Source: Rebecca billardiae RCC1528 (lineage: Eukaryota > Protista > Haptophyta). Taken from it: 64,000 bases of DNA. The number at the start of each line of letters is the position of its first letter. Position 1 is the stretch's first letter. Shown piece by piece: positions 6,317 through 31,065 of this stretch. Location: positions 3,100,001-3,164,000 of the forward strand of contig OZ251223.1 in NCBI GenBank assembly GCA_965240325.2, written 5' to 3'. The notes under the pieces are model-generated. The model was not told where the DNA came from, made no database searches, and was given only the letters and a program-made list of their open reading frames with translations. Both the position numbers and the translations under genes were made by a program.

Positions 6317-6691
6317 TAGACTATGATATACCGGGACCGATATCGCCCGCGGCCGCAGTGTCAGCCAGTATATATTATTATGGCGCACGGCCCCCCCGAA
6401 AGGTCTGAGCTGTGAGCGAAAGCCGGGGGGGGGGCGGGCGGCGCACGTGCTCCGCAAAATCAAAAAAGATAATGGCGGCGGGGCGCGCGTGATATGCTGC
6501 TGGTGCTGGGGATTTTGTACTTTTAGCAGGGCGGGGAAGCTGCTCATGAATGACTACATATTCAACCCCCCGCGGCCCGATAGGCATAATGACGGACGGC
6601 TTGTTTTATACTATTCAATCAGTAGGCAGCAGCCCAATTAAGACGGTAACTCAGCCAGCAATACGCATCCGGCTGGATGAAGTGAATCCAG

Positions 6692-9600
6692 TCAGACACC
6701 TCCGCTGCGATGAAGGCGACCAGCAAGTGCTGACGAACCTCGTCGACGATCTCCGCGTCGTGGGAAGGAGGTGGACGACGGCCCTTCCGACGCCGAGTCG
6801 TCGTCGTGAAGGCCACCGATGAACGCGTCTGCCGACCCCTGGGCGCCGCTCAAAGGTGGCGAGCCGTAGACGGGGGTGAGGGCCGCGCCAGGTCTCAGGA
6901 TGGGCTCGTCCGACACGTCCGTCGAATCCTCGAGCCGCGTACGGCGGTAAGCCATCGGGGTGCGCAGACGCGCGAACATGGGTGACGCATAGCTGCTCGC
7001 GCCGTCCGAGTCGCGATCCGTTTGGCTGTTGCGCGCGGGCTGTCCTCCTCGGTCGCCGTCGCGGAACAGCAGGTTGATGTGATCGAGCACGGGCATGTGC
7101 GAGCGCGCACGGCTGCGAGTGCGCTGGGTGGCCGGCCCCCAGTGAGCGTTGGGCCAGCTGCCATCGCGCAGCTCTGCCTCGTTCCACGTGACGGCGCGGT
7201 GCCGCGAGCGGCGCGCCGGCTCCGGCTCAAAGCCAGCGAGCGCGCCGACGAGCGGCAAACTCTCGTGCGACCCTCCGTACGAAGGGCGGATTGAGCATCG
7301 TGGGCCGCTGGAAGGCGTGTTGCCCGCCGAGTTCGCCGACGGCCCATCGCGGCGCCTTGCCGCCGGCGATGCCGCCGGCGGCGAGAAGCTGGGCGTGCGC
7401 CCGGGCGGGGGGCTGGTCCCTACGGACGATGGCTTCGAGCACGTGATGGGCACGGGGTCGGGTCCGTCGCCGACCTCGGGCGCCTCGCCGATCGCGGTGA
7501 GCCCCAAATCGGACGCGAAGTCCACGTGCGGCAGCGGGGAGTCCGCCGGGGGAGCGGCCTCCTCCGCGCTGCCCGCCAAGCCGACCTGCGGCGCGAGCCG
7601 ATTGCTGCCGCCTGGCGTCCGGCTGCCGCGAGACAGCCGGGAGCCAGACTCTCCGCGCACGTAGCGGCGCGCAGCGGGCGTCGCGCTCGGCCACGAGAAG
7701 GCTGCCAGTGCGGTCCGGAGCGCGCCGCGCACCGCCGAGTTGAAGCGCTCGAATGCGTCGTCGCCGTCGTTCGCACACTGGCACGGGCCGCTGCAGCGGC
7801 ACAGCTCGACGCTCGAGCTGCGCGAGTGGCCGCCGCCCGACCCGTTGGGCGGGCGCGGCACCGGTTGGTCGTGCTCGCCGCCCACGTCGACGTCGAGCGG
7901 CGGCGGGGCGAAGGCCGAGCGGCCCGGGCGCAGCTTCGACGGCGTGATGGGCGGCGGCGACGGTGCGGGAAGCGCGGCGGCGGCTGCGAGCGCGCTCGCG
8001 GAGATGTTGCTCATGGACCTGGGGCCCAGCCCCCACGGCGCAGGCGGCAGGGTGGCGCTCGGCGCGGCCCCAGGGCCCTCCGGCGGCGGGGTGAGCGGCT
8101 GCGGCGTCGCAAACGCGGACTTCATGGGCCGCCGCTTGGACGGCGACTGAGACGACATGCCCCCCGTGCTCGGGCTGCTCGAGCTGAAGAGAGACGGGTC
8201 GGTGACCGAGCTCGCCGAGAGCGGCGGCGACGAGTGGCGCTGCATGACCGCGCTCGAGCCGAACTTCTCGCGGATGAGCTGGAAGATCATCTGCTTGTCC
8301 GACTGGAACGTGGCCTGCGCCGTGCGCGCGTCGAAGGACTGCAGCGCGGCCTCGACCGATCTGCGGTCCTGCATCAGCGCCTTCACGAACGAGCCGCGCT
8401 CCTCGGGCGCCATCGTCAGGTGGAAGATCACGCCCGCGTTGGTCGCGCAGTGCACCGCCTCGTACAGGCTGGTGCGCGCGCGCGCGGACGGCCGCGCCGG
8501 AGGCGGGGCGGGGAGGCGTGCGTGAGGCGTCGCGGTCGCGCGGGCGCGCCGCGGCGGTGCGCGACGGTGGCGCGCGCACCACCACACGCGGCTGAGGCAG
8601 ACGGGCTTGTCCCACGGGTCGAGCACCATGACGACGTGGCCGATGCGGGCGATCACGGCGCCGATGTGGTGCACCTGCTCCTGCACCGCGTGCTGCCGGA
8701 TGCAGAGGGCGTCGATCCACTGCGCGGCGCGCGGGAGGGACGGAGGGGGGGGCAGCACACGCGCGTGAGCGCCGGCGCGCCGGCGCGGCGCGCCCTCGGA
8801 GCAGCAGCGGGGGCCGCGATGGCGCACCAGGTAGGCGGCCTGCGCGTCGAGGCCGTGCAGCTCGAGGTACGCGTCCACGGCGTCGAGCAGCTTGAGAAAG
8901 GAGCACGACTGGGCATGGCACACGAAGAGGCTCGCGCCCGCGACCGCGGGCCGACCGTCCTCCGTCGTCTCGTCCTTCCGCAGCTCCGCGAGCGACAGTC
9001 CCGACTCGCGCGTGAGCGCGTGCAGCTTCTCGCTCAGCACGCGCGTCGGGTCGTCGCGCTCGATCCCGAGCTCGGCGCACAGCTCGCGCAAAAACCTGGG
9101 GCTCACGCCGAGCAGCAGGTGGCGCTGCAGGTTGCTGCCGCGCTCGGACATGCTGAGCACGGCCGCGGCCGACGGCGTGACCGATGCGGCGCGCTTCAGC
9201 CTCGCGGACATGCTCACCGTCGACTTGGACGTGCGCCGCAGCATGTCGTACAGCCGGCGCAGCGGCCCGCGCGCCGGCTCGACGCCGAGCGGCTTGAACG
9301 CCGCGACCAGCACGTACGAGAGGGCGGTGCTCGCGGCGGTGTGCGCCGACGAGAGCGCGAGCGCGCGCCACGGGTTGGCGTGGCACAGGGTGCGCCACAG
9401 CACGAGCGCGAGGATCTCCACCGTGGACCACGCGATGGCGAACCTCATGCTGCGCGAGATGCGCGTCGCGAGCGGCAGCGGCAGCGCCGCGAGCGCGTCG
9501 GTGGCGCTGCGGCGCACCGCAAGGCCGGCGAGGAGCGTCGCGACGAGCCGCAAGAGCGACCACACGAACCACACCGAGGTGACGACGCGCTCGCCCGTCC

Positions 9601-10645
9601 AGAGCAGCGCGCCCGCCATCGCCATGTCGCCGAGCGACGAGATGGCGACCGCGCTCGTGAGCCGCCGCTTGTGCGGCGCATCGCTCGGCGTCGCAAAGCC
9701 GCCGCTCCGCGTGCGATCGCCCAGCCCCTCGTGGAAGGCGATGAAGAGGGCGAACGAGAAGGCGGACGCGGGCAGGTCGAAGCCGCTGATGACCACCGTC
9801 GCCTCGACGGGGAGCGAGCGGAGCACGCCCGGGTCGACGATCAGGTACAGCGCGCGCAGCGTGTTGAGCACGAGCTCGAGCGCGAGCAGCCACTGCGCGG
9901 TCGTCCAGCGGAAGCCGCCGTCCGCCCTGAGGATGGCGTACAGGCGGCAGCCTGCGAGCTCGAGCACGGCGGCGACGCTGAAGAGCAGAAGGCCGTGGAC
10001 CAGCCACACCCAGACGGACGTGCGCATGCGTGTCCACGCGGACACGTCGGGGGACAGCCGGGCGCGCAAGGGGGCGTGGCCGAGGGCGCGCGCGGCCGGG
10101 TCGAGCTCGCCGAGCAGCGCGCGCGTCGCCGGCCCGTCCTCCAGGACAATGTCCGCGGCCAGGAGCGGCTGCGCCGGGGAGCGCGCGTCGCCCACGTGCC
10201 AGGCGTGCATCAGCTGGCCAGGCTCGGCGTCGAGCGCCGCGTCGAGGACCTCGTATCGCACGAGTGCCATGCCGCCGAGCGTGTCGCGCACGTACGTCGA
10301 CTGGCGCTCAAAGGAGCAGCGCAGCCCGTTGAACGCGTCGATGGGAGTGAGCACGAGCGCGCCGCGCATGGAGGCCGGGCGTGGTCCTGTGTACGCCCGC
10401 GGGCAGCCCGCGCCCGCCCACTCATCCATGCGCACGTGCGCGAGATGGCCTTCGGCGGCGAAGCGCCGAGGCGCAAAATCTGGTCGCGCAGCCGCGAGGT
10501 CGAGGTCCGCCACCAGCGGCGGCCCCGAGGTCAGCACGAGCCCAGCGTGCGCACGCGGGAGCTGGGCAATCGAGAGCATCGCCAGCACCACCGCGCACGC
10601 CGCCGCGCGCGGCTCGCCGCGGCGCCCGCAGGCGGCGCTCCTCAT
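6692..10645 (-). CDS. Predicted receptor: signal peptide + PA-like ectodomain + 7TM + cytosolic HET/TIR-like domain (paralog 1)
   Basis: Signal peptide ...AVVLAMLSIAQLPRAHA; PA-like segment GCP...GALVL...CSFERQ...LGGMALV; seven hydrophobic helices. After removing in-frame introns 8720-8827 and 8469-8579 the C-terminal domain reads FVCHAQ...YLWIDALCIRQH...HVVMVLDPWDKPVCLSRVWCLYE, followed by a long Ser/Pro-rich tail. Start codon and 3' end are uncertain. Confidence 0.75.
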   Translation of the reverse strand: MRSAACGRRGEPRAAACAVVLAMLSIAQLPRAHAGLVLTSGPPLVADLDLAAARPDFAPRRFAAEGHLAHVRMDEWAGAGCPRAYTGPRPASMRGALVLTPIDAFNGLRCSFERQSTYVRDTLGGMALVRYEVLDAALDAEPGQLMHAWHVGDARSPAQPLLAADIVLEDGPATRALLGELDPAARALGHAPLRARLSPDVSAWTRMRTSVWVWLVHGLLLFSVAAVLELAGCRLYAILRADGGFRWTTAQWLLALELVLNTLRALYLIVDPGVLRSLPVEATVVISGFDLPASAFSFALFIAFHEGLGDRTRSGGFATPSDAPHKRRLTSAVAISSLGDMAMAGALLWTGERVVTSVWFVWSLLRLVATLLAGLAVRRSATDALAALPLPLATRISRSMRFAIAWSTVEILALVLWRTLCHANPWRALALSSAHTAASTALSYVLVAAFKPLGVEPARGPLRRLYDMLRRTSKSTVSMSARLKRAASVTPSAAAVLSMSERGSNLQRHLLLGVSPRFLRELCAELGIERDDPTRVLSEKLHALTRESGLSLAELRKDETTEDGRPAVAGASLFVCHAQSCSFLKLLDAVDAYLELHGLDAQAAYLVRHRGPRCCSEGAPRRRAGAHARVLPPPPSLPRAAQWIDALCIRQHAVQEQVHHIGAVIARIGHVVMVLDPWDKPVCLSRVWWCARHRRAPPRRARATATPHARLPAPPPARPSARARTSLYEAVHCATNAGVIFHLTMAPEERGSFVKALMQDRRSVEAALQSFDARTAQATFQSDKQMIFQLIREKFGSSAVMQRHSSPPLSASSVTDPSLFSSSSPSTGGMSSQSPSKRRPMKSAFATPQPLTPPPEGPGAAPSATLPPAPWGLGPRSMSNISASALAAAAALPAPSPPPITPSKLRPGRSAFAPPPLDVDVGGEHDQPVPRPPNGSGGGHSRSSSVELCRCSGPCQCANDGDDAFERFNSAVRGALRTALAAFSWPSATPAARRYVRGESGSRLSRGSRTPGGSNRLAPQVGLAGSAEEAAPPADSPLPHVDFASDLGLTAIGEAPEVGDGPDPVPITCSKPSSVGTSPPPGRTPSFSPPAASPAARRRDGPSANSAGNTPSSGPRCSIRPSYGGSHESLPLVGALAGFEPEPARRSRHRAVTWNEAELRDGSWPNAHWGPATQRTRSRARSHMPVLDHINLLFRDGDRGGQPARNSQTDRDSDGASSYASPMFARLRTPMAYRRTRLEDSTDVSDEPILRPGAALTPVYGSPPLSGAQGSADAFIGGLHDDDSASEGPSSTSFPRRGDRRRGSSALAGRLHRSGGV

Positions 10646-11189
10646 GGTCCGCCCAATGGGCTGCCACGCTCGACAGTGGGCTGACAGCATGCTGCCGCCC
10701 GCCACCGTGGTCACCAGTGAGCAAGTGCGCACACGCGGGCGTCGAGAATTCGCGGTTTCCAGCGATCGGTGGCTCCGCACGGTTCATGAGCTGCATGAGC
10801 GACCACGCGGTCGCAACTTGAGGGGGTCCCCGCTCTGGACACTAGCTACCACTGGACAGATGCACGCCTATCATTGAGCAGTTTATAAAAAGTTTCGTCG
10901 AGTGAGCGCGCCAGCTCCGTCAACCACAAACATGATATGACGTGAGAATTGAGAACCCGCGCGGTGCCAGGTTAAGTCACCCGCGTACCTCGCGGGGGTA
11001 CACATATATCAAGTGAACTGCCCAGAGTATTCATATCGGTTAACTCTATGCACTCTCAAATCTCAATCCACTCATCAATCAGGGGCGTTCCCCGCACTGG
11101 TCATACGCCAAATCGAACCGCGTTCCTATTGAAATTGGCTTCCTCTATTTAAAGCGGGTACATTTGATTACGGCCCGCGCCAGTCCGGT

Positions 11190-23113: not shown

Positions 23114-24969
23114 ATGAGCGGGTCAGGCACGCAGCGCAAGCAGTGGTCGCAGGAGGAGGACGACCGCGTGAAGGAGCTCGTTGGGCTGCACGGTGCGCGC
23201 GCGGTCGCTTCGCCTGCGCTCGAGCCGACCCGGAGGACGCGTGCGCGTGCGAGTGCGTCCACTCATCAGCCTCCGGCTGCCTCTCTGGCTACGTGTGCTG
23301 GCTGCGCGCAGGCACGCGCTCCTGGACGTTGGTGGCATCGTACCTCCCCGGTAGGACGGGCAAACAGTGCCGGGAGCGCTGGCACAACCAGCTTGACGAG
23401 GGCATCCGCAAGGATGCGTGGACTGCTGGTGCGTGCACCGCGCAACGTCTGCGTGCGCGCTCTTCCGCGCTGCGCGCACGCGGCGCCTGACGCTTGCAGT
23501 CGCGGCGTGGCGGGTGCGGTGCGCGCTGCCCGCGCGCAGAGGAGGACCAGACCCTACTCGACATGCACGCCAAAGTGGGCAACAAGTGGGCCGAGATCGC
23601 CAAGGCGCTGCCCGGCCGCACCGACAACGCGGTCAAGAACCACTGGAACTCGGCACTGCGGCGCGAGCGCGAGGCGCGCGAGAAAGGCGAGAACCCGACG
23701 CTGCTGCAGGCGCTGCGCAAGGAGATCGAGGGAAAGCAGCCGAAGAAAAATAGCGCCAACGGCGTGGCGGGCGGCTCGCGTGGCAGCGCGAAGAAGAAGA
23801 AGAAGGGGGGCAGCTCGCGCGGCGCCAAGGGCGGCGCCAGGGGCGGCGGTGGGCGGCGCAGTGCTGGCGACGACGACGACGACGACGACGAGGACGAGGA
23901 CGACGAGGACGACGAGGAGGAGGACGATGGGGGGATGGCGGTGGATCTGTTCGGCGCGTTCGGCGACGCGACCGCCCCCGAGGTGACGCGCGTCAACGAG
24001 CTGCTCGCGGCGAACGCGTCGAGCCCGCTCGTGCAGCTGCTCGGCAGCGGCAAGGACATGGACCCGGACGGCTTCGACGCGCTGCTGTCACTCGTGCGCG
24101 CCAAGACGGGGCAGGAGCTGATGGCGGCGAGCGACAGGCTGGTCGAGCGCGTGAAGGGCGGTGGGGACGCCAGCGCGTCCACGCGCGCGGGCAAGGGCGG
24201 CCCGCCCTCCGCGCGCCTGCCGATGGGCATGACGCCGGGCGCGCAGGCGCTCGCAGACGCGTTTGGCCTGCACGTGGGAGGCAGCGTCTCGAGGCCGCTC
24301 GCGACGCCCGGCGGCCTCGAGCTGAGCATGAATGACCTGCTCACGCCGTCGCTCGCGGCGTCCATGGGGCTGGACGAGAGCCTTGCTTCGCAGCTGCACT
24401 CCGCGCTCGCCGACGCCTCGAAGGACAGCAAAAAGCCGGGCTCGGGCGGGAAGCGGCCACCGGGCTCGGCGGCGGCGCAGGAGAGCGCGCCCACCGAGGT
24501 GAAGCGCGCGCGCTCGTCCTCGCGCCCACCGCGCATCGGCATCACGAGGAGCCACGAGGAGGGCGCGGACTCGCCGCACAGCAGCGGGCCGCCCTCGCTC
24601 ACCCGATCGCGCAGCTCGCTGCGCGAGAAGCGCCCGGCCGGCGCGACCGACCTCTCGACGCAGGACCTGCAGGGCGAGCCGGCGAGCTCCCTGGCCGCGC
24701 CTGCGAGCGCCATCACACCCGCGCAGGCGCAGGCGCTGCTCAACTCGCCCGCCGCGCTGCCGCTCTTCGCCGCCGCGCTGTCGCCCGCGCTGTCCGAACC
24801 ACTCGGCCTCTCACCCTCGTCTATCATGACGTTCCTCAACCTCGATAGCCTCAACCTGCCCTCGCCGTCGCTCAACTCGGAGGGCGCGCCGCGCACAGGC
24901 AGCGGGCCTGCAGGCAGCCGCGCTGGCACGCCGTCGGGCCGTCGCTCGTCGCGACTGCGGCCGCAGTGA
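23114..24969 (+). CDS. R2R3-type MYB transcription factor (3 exons)
   Basis: Exons 23114-23192, 23312-23428 and 23540-24969 give WSQEEDD...[22 protein letters not shown]...WTAEED...[25 protein letters not shown]. Confidence 0.92.
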
Positions 24970-25700: not shown

Positions 25701-28700
25701 TCATCCAGCGTGAGCCTGAGGGCGATGAGCATTGACCCCGCCGCCAACGACCGAGGCCGAGCGGGTCAACGCGGGCGGGCTGTCTGCCTGGTTGTTGGGA
25801 TCGGCGTTGGATCGCCGCGCGCTGCGCCACAGCTGAGCGCGTGAGCCCCAGTCCTCGGAGCGGGAGGCCGTGCTGCTACTCCCCTCCTTGGGGCGCGGCG
25901 GGCCCCGCTGCCATGGCCGCATCGCGGTGGGTGGCCCCGCGCTCGGCGCGGTCGCGGTGCGCGAGACCACGCTCCAGCTCAGGTACCCCACCGCCGCCCG
26001 GATGGCTGTGCGCACGGTCGCGTTGAACGCGTCCAGCGCCGCCTCCGCGTCCGCGGGGTCGCGCTCGAGGCCCGCCGCGCGCAGCTGTGCCGCGCTCAGC
26101 CCGCTCGGCGCAAACTTGGAGACGATCAGCTCGAGGATGCGCGCGCGGTCGTCTGCGAGCGAAGCCTCGGCGTGCCGCGCGTCGAAGGAGGTGAGTGCCT
26201 CGCACACGCGCGTGCGGTCGCGGTCGAGTGCGCGGAGGAAGCTCTCGCGCTGCGTGCGCGAGAGCGCGAGCGAGAACTCGACCGGCCGGCTGCCGCCACC
26301 GCCGCCACCGCTGCCGCCCGCGCCGCCGCTGCCCTCAGCCTCCGGCTGCTGCTCGTCTGCCGCGCCCTGCCACGCGCGCGCGCTGCGGCGCTGCGTGTTC
26401 GCCTGCATGATCTCGTACAGGCACCTGGTGCGCGCGCGTGCGCAGGCCACGCCCAACGTGCGGCGCCGCGAGTTGGCGGGCGAGGCGGCGGTCAAGCCGC
26501 GTGCGGACGATACCGGCCGCCGGAGCGCGCGCGCGCGTGGGAGGGAGGGGCGTCTGCGGGGCGGGAGGCACGCGCGCACCACACGCGCGTGAGGGCGATC
26601 GGCTTGTCCCACGGCGAGAGGACGGCCACCATCCGGCCGATTTGGCGCAGGATCGCGCCGATGTGCAGCACGTCCGCGTCGACGCGGTGCTGCCGGATGC
26701 AGCACAGGCTGGGCGGCGCAAGAGGCGTGCGCCGCGTGCGCGGGCGGCGCGTTCCGCACTCGGCCTCACGGCGCGGCCGAGCGGCGCGGCGCGAGCGCGC
26801 GGCGGCGCGTGGGCCGGTCGGCCCGGGTGCGCGGCCAGGTGGGCGCGCAGGCGAGCGCGCACTCGATCCACAGGTAGGTGCGCGCCGCGTCGAGTGAGTG
26901 CAGCTCCATGTGTAGACTGACCGCATCGAGCATGTCCACAAACGAACACGCCTGGGCGTGGCTTACAAAGAGGGTGGCCGGACGCACCGCCGCGCGCCCG
27001 TCCGCCGTCCGCGCCGAGCGCTTGAGCTCGCACAGCGCGAGCCGTGAGGCGGCGGTGATCTCGCGCACGATCTCGCCCGCGCGGTACGACGTGTCCGCCG
27101 CGCCGAGCCCATGCGCCGCGGCGAACTCGCGCAGGAAGGCGAGGGAGACGCCGAGGCCGAGGTGTGGAGGGAAGCCGCCCGTTCCCGCGAGCGCGCGCCG
27201 CTGCGTGTGCGCGGAGCCGAGCGGGGAGCTGGGCTTCATGGCGGCGCAGCAGATGGACAGACGCCGGCCGGCACTCGGCGAGCCGCCACTCGGCGGGCTG
27301 CTGCCGGTAGCGCTCACTCGCTTGCCTCGCTCGGTGGGCGGCGAAGGTGAGCGCGCGCCGCGCGTGTCCGGCGCGGACGGCGCGTCCAAGCGCCCAGCAC
27401 CCTCGCAGCGCGCAGGGTGGACGCGCGCAGAGGCCCCGGGCAGGGCTGCCAGCAGGGCTCGGCTCGCCACGGCGATCGGCGAGCGCGGCGGTGTGGGTGT
27501 GTCGACCGGCGCCGCATGCCGCTCCTTGCCACCGGATCCGGCGGGCACTGCCGATGGGCGCATCACGTGGCCTGCCGCGCGCTCGAGCTCGCAACTGCCT
27601 TTGCCGCCAACACTTTGGCCGTTGCTGCCGCCCCCGCCCGCCACGGGATGCAGCGCTGCCGTCGGCGGCGGCACGGCCGGGGGCACGAGTGGATGCTCGC
27701 CCAGCATCGACGCCGCGTCCACCTCCCGCAGCCCCGGCTGCTTCGGCGCCCCCTCCTCCACGGCTGCGAGCTCGTCGGCAGCCGTTGACGTGACGCTTTC
27801 GATCGAGAGCCGCGATGAGCCGTCGCGCGCGCGGGCCTTGTCGTGCGCGCCGCCGTGCGACTCGCCGCTGCCGCGTCGCGAGGAGGGGGTCGAGCGCTTG
27901 CGGCCGATCTGCATCACGCGCGATCGGCGCAGCTCGGCGACATCTAGGCTGCGCGCCAGCGCGCCGAGCGTCTGCGAGCGCGCTTTGCGCCCCCGTCGCC
28001 GCTCGAAGTGGGCGTGGCCGCTCGGCAGCCGCTGCCGCCGCCGATCTGCCGCGTCGTCGGTGTCTGTCGCGCTCAGCGGTCGGCGCTGGGCGGGCAGGTC
28101 GGCGCCTGTCGGCTCGGAGGCCCTCCGTTCCGAAGCAGGTGGGCTCTCTTGCGCTGCGCGCGAGCTCGCCACGCACGCGCGCACCCCAGCCGCCAGCCCG
28201 TTGGCTGCGCGCTCGAGCGGGCCGTGCACGATCGCGACGCCAATCGGCACGAACACCTTCAGCTTGGCCACGGTGAGGCACGCGTGCACGACCGTCAGTG
28301 GCGCGGGCTGCAGGAGGCGCGCCCACGGGCGGAAGAGGCACGGCTGCCAGAACGGGCCGACCACCACGCCGAGCGCAACGAGCACGAGCACGCGGCGCGT
28401 CTCGCGGACGAGGTAGCTGAGCACGACGGGCGGCGACGCGCCTGCGTACAGGCCCATGCGCGCCCGGCGGTGCGCGTACAGCGCAAAGGCGCAGATCGGG
28501 ATGGGCAGCAGTGAGGTGGACCACGACAGGCGCAGCGTGCCGGCCGGGGAGACGTCGAACAAAGTCGGTGAGTAGAGCAGCAACAGATCCGCGCCCACCG
28601 CCAGCAGCAGCAGCAGGAGCGCCAGACGGCGGTAGAAGCGCGTGCCGATCGAGAGCGAGACCAGCCCGGCCGCGTCGCTCGCCTCGCAGAAGTACACGAG

Positions 28701-29579
28701 GAACAGGAAGGTAGAGAGCGAGGACAGGTCGTACGGCGCGGTGCGTAGACGCACCGCCACGCCATATGACAGGCGCCCCGGCCAGAAGAAGATCGGGTCC
28801 AGCACCACCTGCGCGAGCCGCAGCCCGTTGGCGCTCACCTCGAGGCCGAGCATCAGCTGCGGGATCGTGGCGCGCACGCGCCCGTCCGCGCGGAGGAAGC
28901 TGACGAGGCGCGACACGGCCATCTCGAGCGCGAACGCAACCACGAGGGCGAGCACAACCGTCCACAGCGTGAAGAACCACGTCGTGAACAGCCGATCGAA
29001 CGCCGAGCTCGATGGCGCGAGCGTGCCCCGCGCCGCGCGACCCGAGCGCAGCGACGCGATGAGCGGTGCGGCCGCGGCCGACGTGATGTCTGCACCGATC
29101 AGGCCGTCAAACGCGCGCACGTCGCCGTTGAGCCACAGCCGAGAGATGTACCCCGGCACGGGCCGCAATGGCAAGCTCTGCTCGCTGAACGACAGCCAGC
29201 CAGCCGCGCCGAGCGCAGCGGCGGCGCGCGCATGACGCTCCGGGCTGCAGACGAAGGACCTCGCGTGCACGGCGATGACCAGCGCGCCGTGCAGGCGGGA
29301 CGCGTGCCCCTCCCCGACGTATTCGGGCGGGCATCCGCGCCACTCGGTCTCCTCCGTGAGCACGAGCGGCGCACTCACGGGCGCGGCGTCTGCGGGCGTG
29401 AAGCCGTAGCGTGGAGCGTCGAGTACATCGCCTGAGTCGAGCACGAGGTGTGCCCTGGCGACAGCGGGCGCGAGCGCGAGAGCCATGGCGAGCGACCTCC
29501 AAGAGAGTATGCCCAGCTGAGGACGACACGACCTTCGCCGCCTCGGCCGGGGCGCCAACGCGCCCAGCGTGGCGAGCAT
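25701..29579 (-). CDS. Predicted receptor: signal peptide + PA-like ectodomain + 7TM + cytosolic HET/TIR-like domain (paralog 2)
   Basis: Colinear with paralog 1: WRGCPP..G...GALVI...CSPER, seven TM helices, LGVSLAFLRE, LFVSHAQACSF. Removing introns 26709-26862 and 26425-26579 restores YLWIDLCCIRQH...LSPWDKPIALTRVWCLYE. The start could be 29486 instead. Confidence 0.75.
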
Positions 29580-31065
29580 CGTCCGCTCGACGCCTTCGAG
29601 GGGAGGAGTGTCGCCACCGCCAGGCCGACGACACGAGGGGATCCAGCCCAGGCGTTGGGAATCCACAATATGAACGGGGTTCAGAAGGTTCGCCTCATCA
29701 AGCAAACTGTACATCGCACATTCATGAATCAGCGGACGAATCTTCGTCGATCATCAGATGTCATTTAAGTATCTTACCTCCCCTGTGAAGCCGGAAGCTG
29801 CCGCCGTCGTGCGCCGGCCCGGCCGCTCCGACGCGTTGGTGCCCGCGTGGGCATTCCGGGCAGCAATAAACCCGCCGTACTCGTCGTCCCCAACCGCGTG
29901 TTGGCCGTATACCTCACACTCACAGTCAGAGGCGAGCCTCTGCGCCGCGCCGGGCGGGTCACGCCGCATGCGCGGCTGCGGCCCGGGTCTACTACTAGCC
30001 CGGACCCTGTCACCCGTTACCGGCCGGCGCGCGGGGCTGGCAACCGCAATGAGAGTCTCAGACCGATAGTGAGCCGGAAGAAGCAGAAGAGCCTAACCGT
30101 CGGAAGGTGACATCATCAGTAACTACCGCCTGTTTCGTTTGAGCATCATCCGCAACAATGAACGTGGCTCATCAGTGACGTATTATGAGAGTACAGTAGC
30201 TTGGAAGTTCAGCCTTCAGGCTGCTGACGTGGCCCGTGACAGACAGGCGTGGCTCAGCGGCGCGGGACCTGATGACGAGTGACTACTACTAGGCCAGTAC
30301 TGTCACCGTGCGCAGCGTCACGGATCACACAGCCGGATGATGTCATCATCATGCGGTCATTTATCACTACTGAAATCGTAGTGCTAAATAGCAGTACCAA
30401 AAAGTAGTAGGGGGCAGAGATCGTGTACTACCTACTCGTCGCCAGCTCTCGTTGACTCGTCGTCTGCCCGTGACAGCAGCTCCATTAGCTGCTACGGTAC
30501 GGCCAGATGTGAGATGGTGGCGGGTACTTCGTTCGATGGTGGCTGCCCAGGTAGTGCGGCACGTGCGTGCCTCTGGACGGGCCGTGGCGAGGTCGCCAAA
30601 TCGCATGGCATCGTCCCAACGAAGGCTGCTAGTACCCCTGACCAGCTTGCTAGCCATGCCGGTCGTTGATCATCCCGCCGTTGACAGGCGCGCACGTGCC
30701 ACACATAGCACACGCCACACGTATGCGCACGGCAGCCGTGTCGGACTGGCGCGGTCGCACGACTAGTTACCGCACAGCCTGGCGGAACTACATTCAGATT
30801 GTCAGACTCATGCTGGGAGTCTGCTAGCAGTGAATTTGTCGTCAGGGACGCGGTCATGGAATCCTCAGATCGCGAACTGAAAGTCTGATGAATTGATATA
30901 GGTCTGCATACACCCTCGCCTGGCATGCCGGCATGCCTCAGACGTCATACTTGTACTAGCACCGCCGTCAGCTAGAAGGGTGATGATAGTCATGTACTAC
31001 TGGCCGGTCGTCAGCGCGCGCGACTTAATGTTATTGCATCATCAGCATCATGACGATGCCCTGTA

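Follow-up and report, generated by a model that had tools for sequence, protein, structure and literature searches.

A second, diverged gene for a PA-7TM-TIR/HET-like protein in the haptophyte Rebecca billardiae, and the family to which it belongs

We analysed a 64,000-nucleotide (nt) stretch of genomic DNA from the haptophyte Rebecca billardiae RCC1528 (GenBank assembly GCA_965240325.2, contig OZ251223.1, forward-strand positions 3,100,001 to 3,164,000), hereafter the window, whose composition is eukaryotic, with 60–79% GC and short GT..AG introns. On its minus strand, at 25701–29579, lies an intact three-exon gene, here called P2, that starts with an ATG at 29579, ends with a stop codon at 25701–25703 and encodes about 1189 amino acids (aa). 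The predicted product carries, in order, a signal-peptide-like stretch, a PA-like ectodomain, seven transmembrane (TM) helices (7TM), a low-complexity linker and a domain with likenesses to both TIR and HET domains, referred to below as the effector. A paralog with the same domain order, P1, lies nearby, and the architecture recurs among haptophytes. We are highly confident that this fixed architecture is correct and that the proteins bearing it form a real, old haptophyte family.

P2 does not read as a single open reading frame (ORF), since the minus strand at the locus holds three open stretches over two frames (Table 1). Splicing rejoins the frames exactly at WI/D-LCCIRQH and RVW/CLYE, and both motifs exist only after splicing. 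Because both junctions restore blocks that are conserved among relatives, the gene model is strongly backed from within. GC content at third codon positions (GC3) is 84–98% in the structured parts of P2 (98% in exon 2) and drops to 64% upstream of 29579, which speaks for a start here rather than at the ATG at 29714. The first half of the linker shows clear codon periodicity (GC3 86; second-position GC, GC2, 63), the second half weak periodicity (GC3 81, GC2 75). Codon-position GC is nearly flat at 27165–27660 (P2 aa 641–805) and in the tail at 25704–25943, with GC2 of 72–75 and GC3 of 80–81. Low-complexity coding sequence would account for this, as would hidden in-frame introns, and the exact length of P2 is uncertain.

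One alternative is that P2 is silent or decaying, with P1-type genes alone in use. The exact product of the P2 ORF, looked up from two start codons, is missing from a public collection of 15 billion proteins, where the P1 product is present from two runs (P0001), and the weak periodicity of the tail and of part of the linker would fit decay. Set against this, none of the three exons is interrupted, the splice sites are canonical and splicing restores the motifs exactly; GC3 in the structured parts is high and every residue that is near-invariant in the family is retained. We therefore regard a silent P2 as very improbable.

Table 1. Features of the P2 gene and of its paralog P1, in window coordinates
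Feature	Position	Strand	Description
P2 exon 1	26863..29579	-	905 codons plus 2 nt; signal peptide, ectodomain, 7TM, linker and first effector part; ends ..TYLWI plus two bases; donor GTGCGCG at 26862
P2 intron 1	26709..26862	-	154 nt, GT..AG, phase 2; contains a stop in the exon-1 frame
P2 exon 2	26580..26708	-	129 nt; D-LCCIRQH ... VLSPWDKPIALTRV-W(tg), also written as ending SPWDKPIALTRV plus two bases; split first codon is Asp
P2 intron 2	26425..26579	-	155 nt, GT..AG, phase 2; divides the Trp codon
P2 exon 3	25701..26424	-	W-CLYE, 36-aa low-complexity loop, remaining effector (SFDAR.., FNATVR..YLSW, end ~25974), 90-aa tail, stop 25701–25703
Signal-peptide-like stretch	29451..29579	-	aa 1–43, hydrophobic core ..SLAMALALAPAVARA; from a hydropathy scan; aligns with the P1 N-terminal hydrophobic stretch; putative cleavage site
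PA-like alpha/beta ectodomain	28986..29450	-	aa 44–198; AlphaFold2 model m1bd679d71c34, predicted local distance difference test (pLDDT) > 90
Seven TM helices, GPCR-like bundle	28254..28979	-	aa 201–442; AlphaFold2 and VIA-align
Post-TM7 helix	28158..28220	-	aa 454–474; AlphaFold2 helix at model residues 415–435; position of GPCR helix 8
Low-complexity linker	27165..28154	-	aa 476–805 (~330 aa); gap in the P1 alignment, not in P1
Effector part 1	26863..27164	-	aa 806–905; helical pre-domain (LGVS..FLREF), betaA-alphaA (LFVSHAQACSF..) to YLWI; matches at least 30 family members, E 1e-7 to 1e-30
Conserved Glu codon of WCLYE	26412..26414	-	~residue 953 of the spliced product; four residues after Trp
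P1	6692..10645	-	same architecture; lies in ORF 6692–10780, start Met 10645; introns 8720–8827 and 8469–8579

Searching the window by tblastn with pieces of P2 returned one further copy, on the same strand at 6692–10780, and no third copy elsewhere in it. The effector pieces matched P1 at E 1.9e-19 and 2.4e-14, and the ectodomain together with the TM region at E 5e-16 over 554 aa. With an intergenic distance of 15.06 kb, these matches bear out the starting claim, made by an earlier reading of the letters alone (the sequence-only reading), that the same domain order occurs about 15 kb away on the same strand. All six effector motif strings quoted there were found in both genes. P2 is a true, diverged paralog of P1 with equal architecture. 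Identity between the two is 33–37% in the ectodomain and 28% in the TM region; in the effector it is 49% (98 aa, exon 1), 60% (40 aa, exon 2) and 45% (60 aa, exon 3). Low-complexity sequence was also correctly placed before the effector in P2 and within or after it in P1: the pre-effector linker measures ~330 aa in P2 versus ~50 aa in P1, the spacing from the KF block to the FN block 30 versus 174 aa, and the C-terminal tail 90 versus 332 aa.

The P1 introns (108 and 111 nt) are in frame by chance, so that P1 reads as a single ORF, whereas those of P2 are not in frame. On the coding alignment, the intron positions of the two genes differ by 8 nt (intron 1) and 3 nt (intron 2), and WID precedes the intron in P2 and follows it in P1. 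Intron 2 has similar ends in both genes (GTGCGCGCG ... CGCGCGCACCAG). Two Logan contigs of ~4.66 kb, L001 (ERR14847151) and L002 (ERR14847148), are 99.5% and 100% identical to window 6448–11115; they span P1 nearly end to end and retain both of its introns.

Word-index protein searches with P2 exon 1 and with its effector part returned nothing, and the family surfaced only by an exhaustive profile search (E ≤ 1e-3) whose query was an alignment of the P2 and P1 N-terminal modules. This search gave 73 cluster representatives, 54 of them at E ≤ 1e-10, most of which align across the entire ectodomain and membrane region. In about 35 representatives a P2-type effector immediately follows the membrane module; the shorter of these resemble fragments or intron read-through of genomic contigs. 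The named members, at least seven proteins, all come from the pavlovophyte haptophyte Diacronema lutheri: KAG8458553.1, KAG8458467.1, KAG8459293.1, KAG8460825.1, KAG8463106.1 and the adjacent KAG8471001.1 and KAG8471002.1. P2 aligns with the family end to end in both modules and is equally similar to P1 and to the Diacronema proteins. The recurrence of the architecture across clusters and in several D. lutheri proteins speaks against a chance gene fusion, as the sequence-only reading had argued from the second copy. None of the 73 matches joins the PA-7TM module to a different effector; two long matches that lack the effector, P0012 and P0038, have no Pfam domain and may be intron read-through.

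A maximum-likelihood tree places P1 with P0009 and P0018 (support 98/95) and P2 with a group that holds the cluster of Diacronema KAG8459293.1 (support 92/98), and the P1 and P2 copies are therefore old. In an approximately unbiased (AU) test, a sister relationship of the two was not rejected (p 0.21), and for this reason we do not claim that the duplication is older than the Pavlovales split. In Diacronema, KAG8471001.1 and KAG8471002.1 (P0058 and P0080) have consecutive accessions and locus tags on one 3-Mb contig, and look like a tandem pair that echoes the proximity of P1 and P2. UniRef names two Diacronema members heterokaryon-incompatibility-domain proteins. For a further member, KAG8460825.1 (P0014), which has ~320 aa between the 7TM region and the effector (residues ~450–770), UniRef gives the label "RGS domain". 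Pfam returned no RGS in this protein at E ≤ 1, and the label is unconfirmed; if true, it would tie the family to G-protein signalling.

AlphaFold2 modelling of P2 residues 40–475 on a 44-sequence family alignment gave an alpha/beta ectodomain followed by seven long helices and one extra helix (mean pLDDT 92.7, predicted template modelling score 0.90). The seven helices occupy model residues 162–193, 200–221, 233–263, 275–302, 307–340, 345–375 and 379–403. In a wide VIA-align search of 48,161 Protein Data Bank (PDB) representative chains, the best 50 matches of the bundle all had the fold of G-protein-coupled receptors (GPCRs), from several classes, with Z 13.8–16.5 and 211–273 residues aligned over model residues 151–411. 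These Z scores exceed the VIA-align level for a plain helical bundle, and Foldseek with the same model also returned GPCRs. The membrane region is thus modelled as seven helices in a GPCR arrangement, and the helix that follows them would be a counterpart of GPCR helix 8.

For the ectodomain, the model points to a PA-type alpha/beta fold. The best Foldseek match was the ZNRF3 ectodomain (TM-score by target 0.57–0.60 over ~160 columns), and the PA-bearing aminopeptidase 2ek8 was also returned; E values were weak, at ~5e-3. The Pfam PA family (PF02225) matched four of 48 family members at E ≤ 0.01 (best E 7e-6) and none of the P2 pieces; P0058 and P0080 scored 19.9–20.3 bits, under the 23.9 cut-off. 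Pfam 7TM families matched neither P2 nor any of the 48 relatives. Two charged residues in the predicted membrane core, Glu219 in TM1 (~28923–28925) and Arg254 in TM2 (~28818–28820), are near-invariant in the family (at least 90%) and could constitute a buried charged pair or belong to a ligand or switch site.

Known proteins share single parts of this N-terminal module. Plant 7TM-RGS1, the GPCR-PIPK proteins of oomycetes and Dictyostelium, and LYCHOS likewise join a GPCR-fold core to an output domain of their own, and the top fold matches of the P2 bundle include LYCHOS as well as many GPCR classes. Unlike them, P2 has a TIR/HET-like output and no match to a Pfam 7TM family. PA membrane proteins such as ZNRF3/RNF43, plant vacuolar sorting receptors and SPPL2 also place a PA-fold ectodomain directly before the membrane, but these have either a single span with a RING domain, or nine helices that bear protease motifs. 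An SPPL2-type protease reading of P2 was dropped after inspection of the translation by eye, in which the membrane region contained no GxGD-type motif.

Because the P2 effector is split over three exons, we modelled this domain on a relative in which it is contiguous (P0048, residues 476–733; model mb945c1f837b6, pLDDT 93.5) and kept the exon pieces of P2 and P1 as separate alignment rows. The exon 2 piece of P2 matches the family at E 1e-5 to 1e-15, and the FN..VR..SW block of exon 3 aligns with P1 and in the family alignment. The top Foldseek rows for the model were all TIR domains, at E 0.06–1. VIA-align gave SARM1 a Z of 6.4 (root-mean-square deviation 3.2, 111 residues), followed by SpbK (6.1), MyD88 (5.9), RPP1 (5.7) and ThsB (5.3); nucleoside deoxyribosyltransferases and DprA scored like the TIRs. 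These matches support a TIR-type flavodoxin-like core over model residues 70–258 and are not proof of TIR membership. A helical pre-domain (LLLGVS..FLR.F, model residues 1–65) precedes the core, and no PDB match spans it. We treat it as integral to the protist domain because protist matches in the ESM-Atlas cover it. In that shape search the whole 258-aa domain recurs across protists (TM-score by query 0.81–0.86), TPR-linked in oomycetes and haptophytes, linked to other domains, or free-standing.

Likenesses to HET domains lie in short sequence blocks. Three HET-type blocks, LFVSHAQ, WID-LCCIRQH and RVW-CLYE, occur in order in spliced P2 and are conserved family-wide, and they correspond to the consensus blocks of fungal HET proteins (PF06985; HET-e, TOL, HET-6), namely hydrophobic-S/Y-H/Y-x, WIDxxCIxQ and RxWxxxE. 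HET was the sole Pfam family matched by more than one cut-out effector (three of 32, best E 0.007). The fungal proteins differ from P2 in being cytosolic and often fused to NACHT or repeats, with no 7TM receptor, and the P2 family scores under the Pfam cut-off. A word search with the profile of the effector alignment added nine relatives, including one MMETSP transcript; none of these nine has a Pfam label, which leaves no transitive link to HET. The HET domain is remotely related to TIR, and HET-like domains have been reported from haptophytes since 2014 (PMC4986451). The label PA-7TM-HET/TIR given by the sequence-only reading thus agrees with the fold evidence, but Pfam HET and all TIR families stay below threshold.

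The residues that are invariant or nearly so across the family are a His, Trp-x-Asp, Pro-Trp and Trp-x3-Glu. The last of these is the WCLYE block, in which every family row that reaches the column has the Glu (17 of 17) and likewise the Trp (16 of 16); the expectation that this Glu is kept across the family was therefore confirmed. In the model, the Glu sits four residues past an invariant Trp at the start of helix 152–163. The same spacing is found in the catalytic motifs of SARM1 and plant TIRs and in the HET consensus. From motif and helix position, the Glu is a candidate equivalent of the TIR catalytic Glu. Catalytic TIRs (SARM1, plant TNL and bacterial ThsB and SpbK) are the best structural matches of the effector model, whose family has an invariant Glu four residues after an invariant Trp, but there is no match at the level of sequence and the equivalence of the Glu is putative.

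Toll-like and IL-1 receptors are among the closest known analogs in overall design, pairing a surface receptor with a cytoplasmic TIR-fold output, and TIRs are the best PDB fold matches of the P2-type effector. The block VLSPW..L.R.WCLYE resembles the betaC-alphaC block of TIR domains. Unlike P2, these receptors have a single span rather than seven GPCR-fold helices, and an LRR or Ig ectodomain rather than a PA-like one. Relative to their TIRs, the P2 effector has an additional helical pre-domain, a longer C-terminal half and no Pfam TIR match. A further comparison is a Gephyrocapsa huxleyi TIR protein (PMC12489294), also from a haptophyte, which has an extracellular region and an intracellular TIR with a conserved Glu. 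The Gephyrocapsa genes were defined by HHsuite matches to Pfam TIR, unlike P2, and the Glu of the example is at 836 versus ~953 in P2. P2 could not be matched to any gene identifier in that study.

From these parts we favour, by a modest measure, the reading that P2 is a membrane receptor consisting of a signal peptide, a PA-like domain, a GPCR-fold bundle, a short helix, a disordered linker and a cytoplasmic TIR/HET-like domain of ~250 aa, which would signal defence or cell death. The signal peptide and the odd number of helices would put the N-terminus outside and the effector inside. A ligand bound at the PA domain or in the 7TM pocket could alter the bundle or its oligomeric state and so bring the cytoplasmic domains together. 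Two outputs are conceivable for the clustered TIR/HET-like domains: cleavage of NAD+ or a similar nucleotide by way of the conserved Glu, in the manner of SARM1 and of plant and bacterial TIRs, or nucleation of a homotypic signalling assembly. Either would end in defence or cell death. The invariance of Trp-x3-Glu favours the enzyme reading, and the occurrence of the same domain in TPR-linked form favours the scaffold reading. We propose a catalytic output only tentatively.

Several results weigh against the receptor reading as a whole. None of the P2 pieces matched any Pfam family, P2 contains none of the known GPCR sequence motifs, and nothing favours G-protein coupling. PDB sequence searches found no relatives of P2, and the effector profile found no TIR among PDB sequences. 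Pfam TIR families gave no match even at E ≤ 10, whether full-length members or cut-out effectors were used, and PADLOC gave none. The best full-length scores against Pfam HET (PF06985) were 11.7–12.4 bits versus a gathering cut-off of 22.5, and covered the WIDxxCIxQ block only. The TIR fold scores are modest (Z 5–6.4, Foldseek E 0.06–1) with non-TIR flavodoxin-like enzymes among the same rows, and the effector model derives from P0048, not from P2. The absence of the exact P2 product from the protein collection and the weak codon periodicity of the second half of the linker count on the same side.

The cytoplasmic domain could also be a non-catalytic adaptor that pairs homotypically, as in Toll-like receptors, with soluble proteins bearing the same domain, for example the TPR proteins of haptophytes and oomycetes, and carries out no nucleotide chemistry. 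The TPR-linked and free-standing forms of the 258-aa domain in protist clusters and the weak likeness to catalytic TIRs are consistent with such a role, and HET domains have been proposed as adaptors by Dyrka et al. (PMC4986451). However, catalysis explains a family-invariant Trp-x3-Glu more easily than a contact surface does. Many supposed TIR adaptors have, moreover, proved to be enzymes, a point also made in a preprint (bioRxiv 10.64898/2026.04.20.719644). An adaptor without chemistry appears somewhat unlikely to us.

If the membrane receptor served in immunity, the sensor might be expected to vary more than the effector, and the sequence-only reading had described such a pattern. We compared mean pairwise identity by region among 11 full-length members. 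It was 33% in the ectodomain, 27% in the 7TM region, 25% in the helical pre-domain and 34% in the TIR-like core as a whole; within the core it was 41% from betaA to alphaC and 26% after alphaC. The variable sensor and conserved effector hold for the P1/P2 pair and for the betaA-alphaC half, the only part that clearly exceeds the ectodomain (41% versus 33%), but the family-wide contrast is modest. Similarly, the greater divergence of the ectodomain and TM region applies to the pair, whereas across the family the ectodomain is level with the whole core and, of the three main modules, the membrane bundle is the least conserved. Ratios of nonsynonymous to synonymous change (dN/dS) per domain between P1 and P2 (Nei-Gojobori) were 0.5–1.1, with no hint of positive selection in the sensor; given near-saturated synonymous differences and a genome GC3 above 85%, we take these values as uninformative.

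These numbers bear on the possibility that P2 is an ordinary receptor for chemosensing or cell-cell recognition (nutrients, pheromones, gametes, self and non-self) rather than a pathogen sensor, with a TIR/HET-like domain that generates a second messenger or passes one on. The ectodomain is not hypervariable, its mean identity being equal to that of the effector core, no sign of positive selection appears, the family is old with a stable architecture, and fungal HET domains serve allorecognition (PMC4986451). Against this, TIR-domain genes of Gephyrocapsa huxleyi, to which P2 has not been mapped, answer virus infection (PMC12489294), and diverged multi-copy paralogs suit a repertoire of the immune type. 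We consider an ordinary recognition receptor improbable. A role in defence or cell death is made plausible by HET and TIR biology (PMC4986451) and by the Gephyrocapsa TIR-domain genes, which are induced in virus-infected and virus-resistant cells (PMC12489294). We regard defence as a possible function of P2, at somewhat less than an even chance.

The most specific form of the receptor reading is doubtful. Here the family would be a haptophyte-specific receptor class whose GPCR-fold sensor acts directly on a catalytic TIR/HET domain. With neither G proteins nor adaptors involved, an extracellular cue (a virus, a bacterium or a kin cell) would lead to NAD+-derived signals, or would deplete NAD+ and kill the cell. 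P1 and P2 would then be old subtypes with different ligands.

In literature searches we found no paper that describes a PA-7TM-TIR/HET architecture. HET-like domains in haptophytes and the link between HET and TIR are known already; their fusion to a PA-7TM module is what we did not find described. Giant viruses terminate coccolithophore blooms, and little is known of how these algae detect infection and respond to it. If our reading is true, a conserved multi-copy family that joins a GPCR-fold surface sensor to a TIR/HET-like domain is a candidate for the infection-sensing step. It would also link a seven-helix receptor to its output in a new way, and would connect the HET modules of fungi with the TIR modules of animals and plants and the cell-death modules of protists. 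P2 adds to this that the architecture is not a one-off fusion, that the neighbouring copies are old and that the putative catalytic residue is kept family-wide. TIR-domain genes have recently been tied to virus resistance (PMC12489294).

Two long ORFs overlap P2 in other frames or on the other strand, at 26335–28980 (minus, 881 aa) and 26878–28416 (plus, 512 aa). Both are rich in Arg, Ala, Pro and Gly and have no relatives, and they are chance ORFs of the kind expected at 76% GC. Just downstream of P2, on the opposite strand, an ORF at 23494–24969 (plus) encodes a Myb/SANT-like stretch followed by a long run of Asp and Glu.

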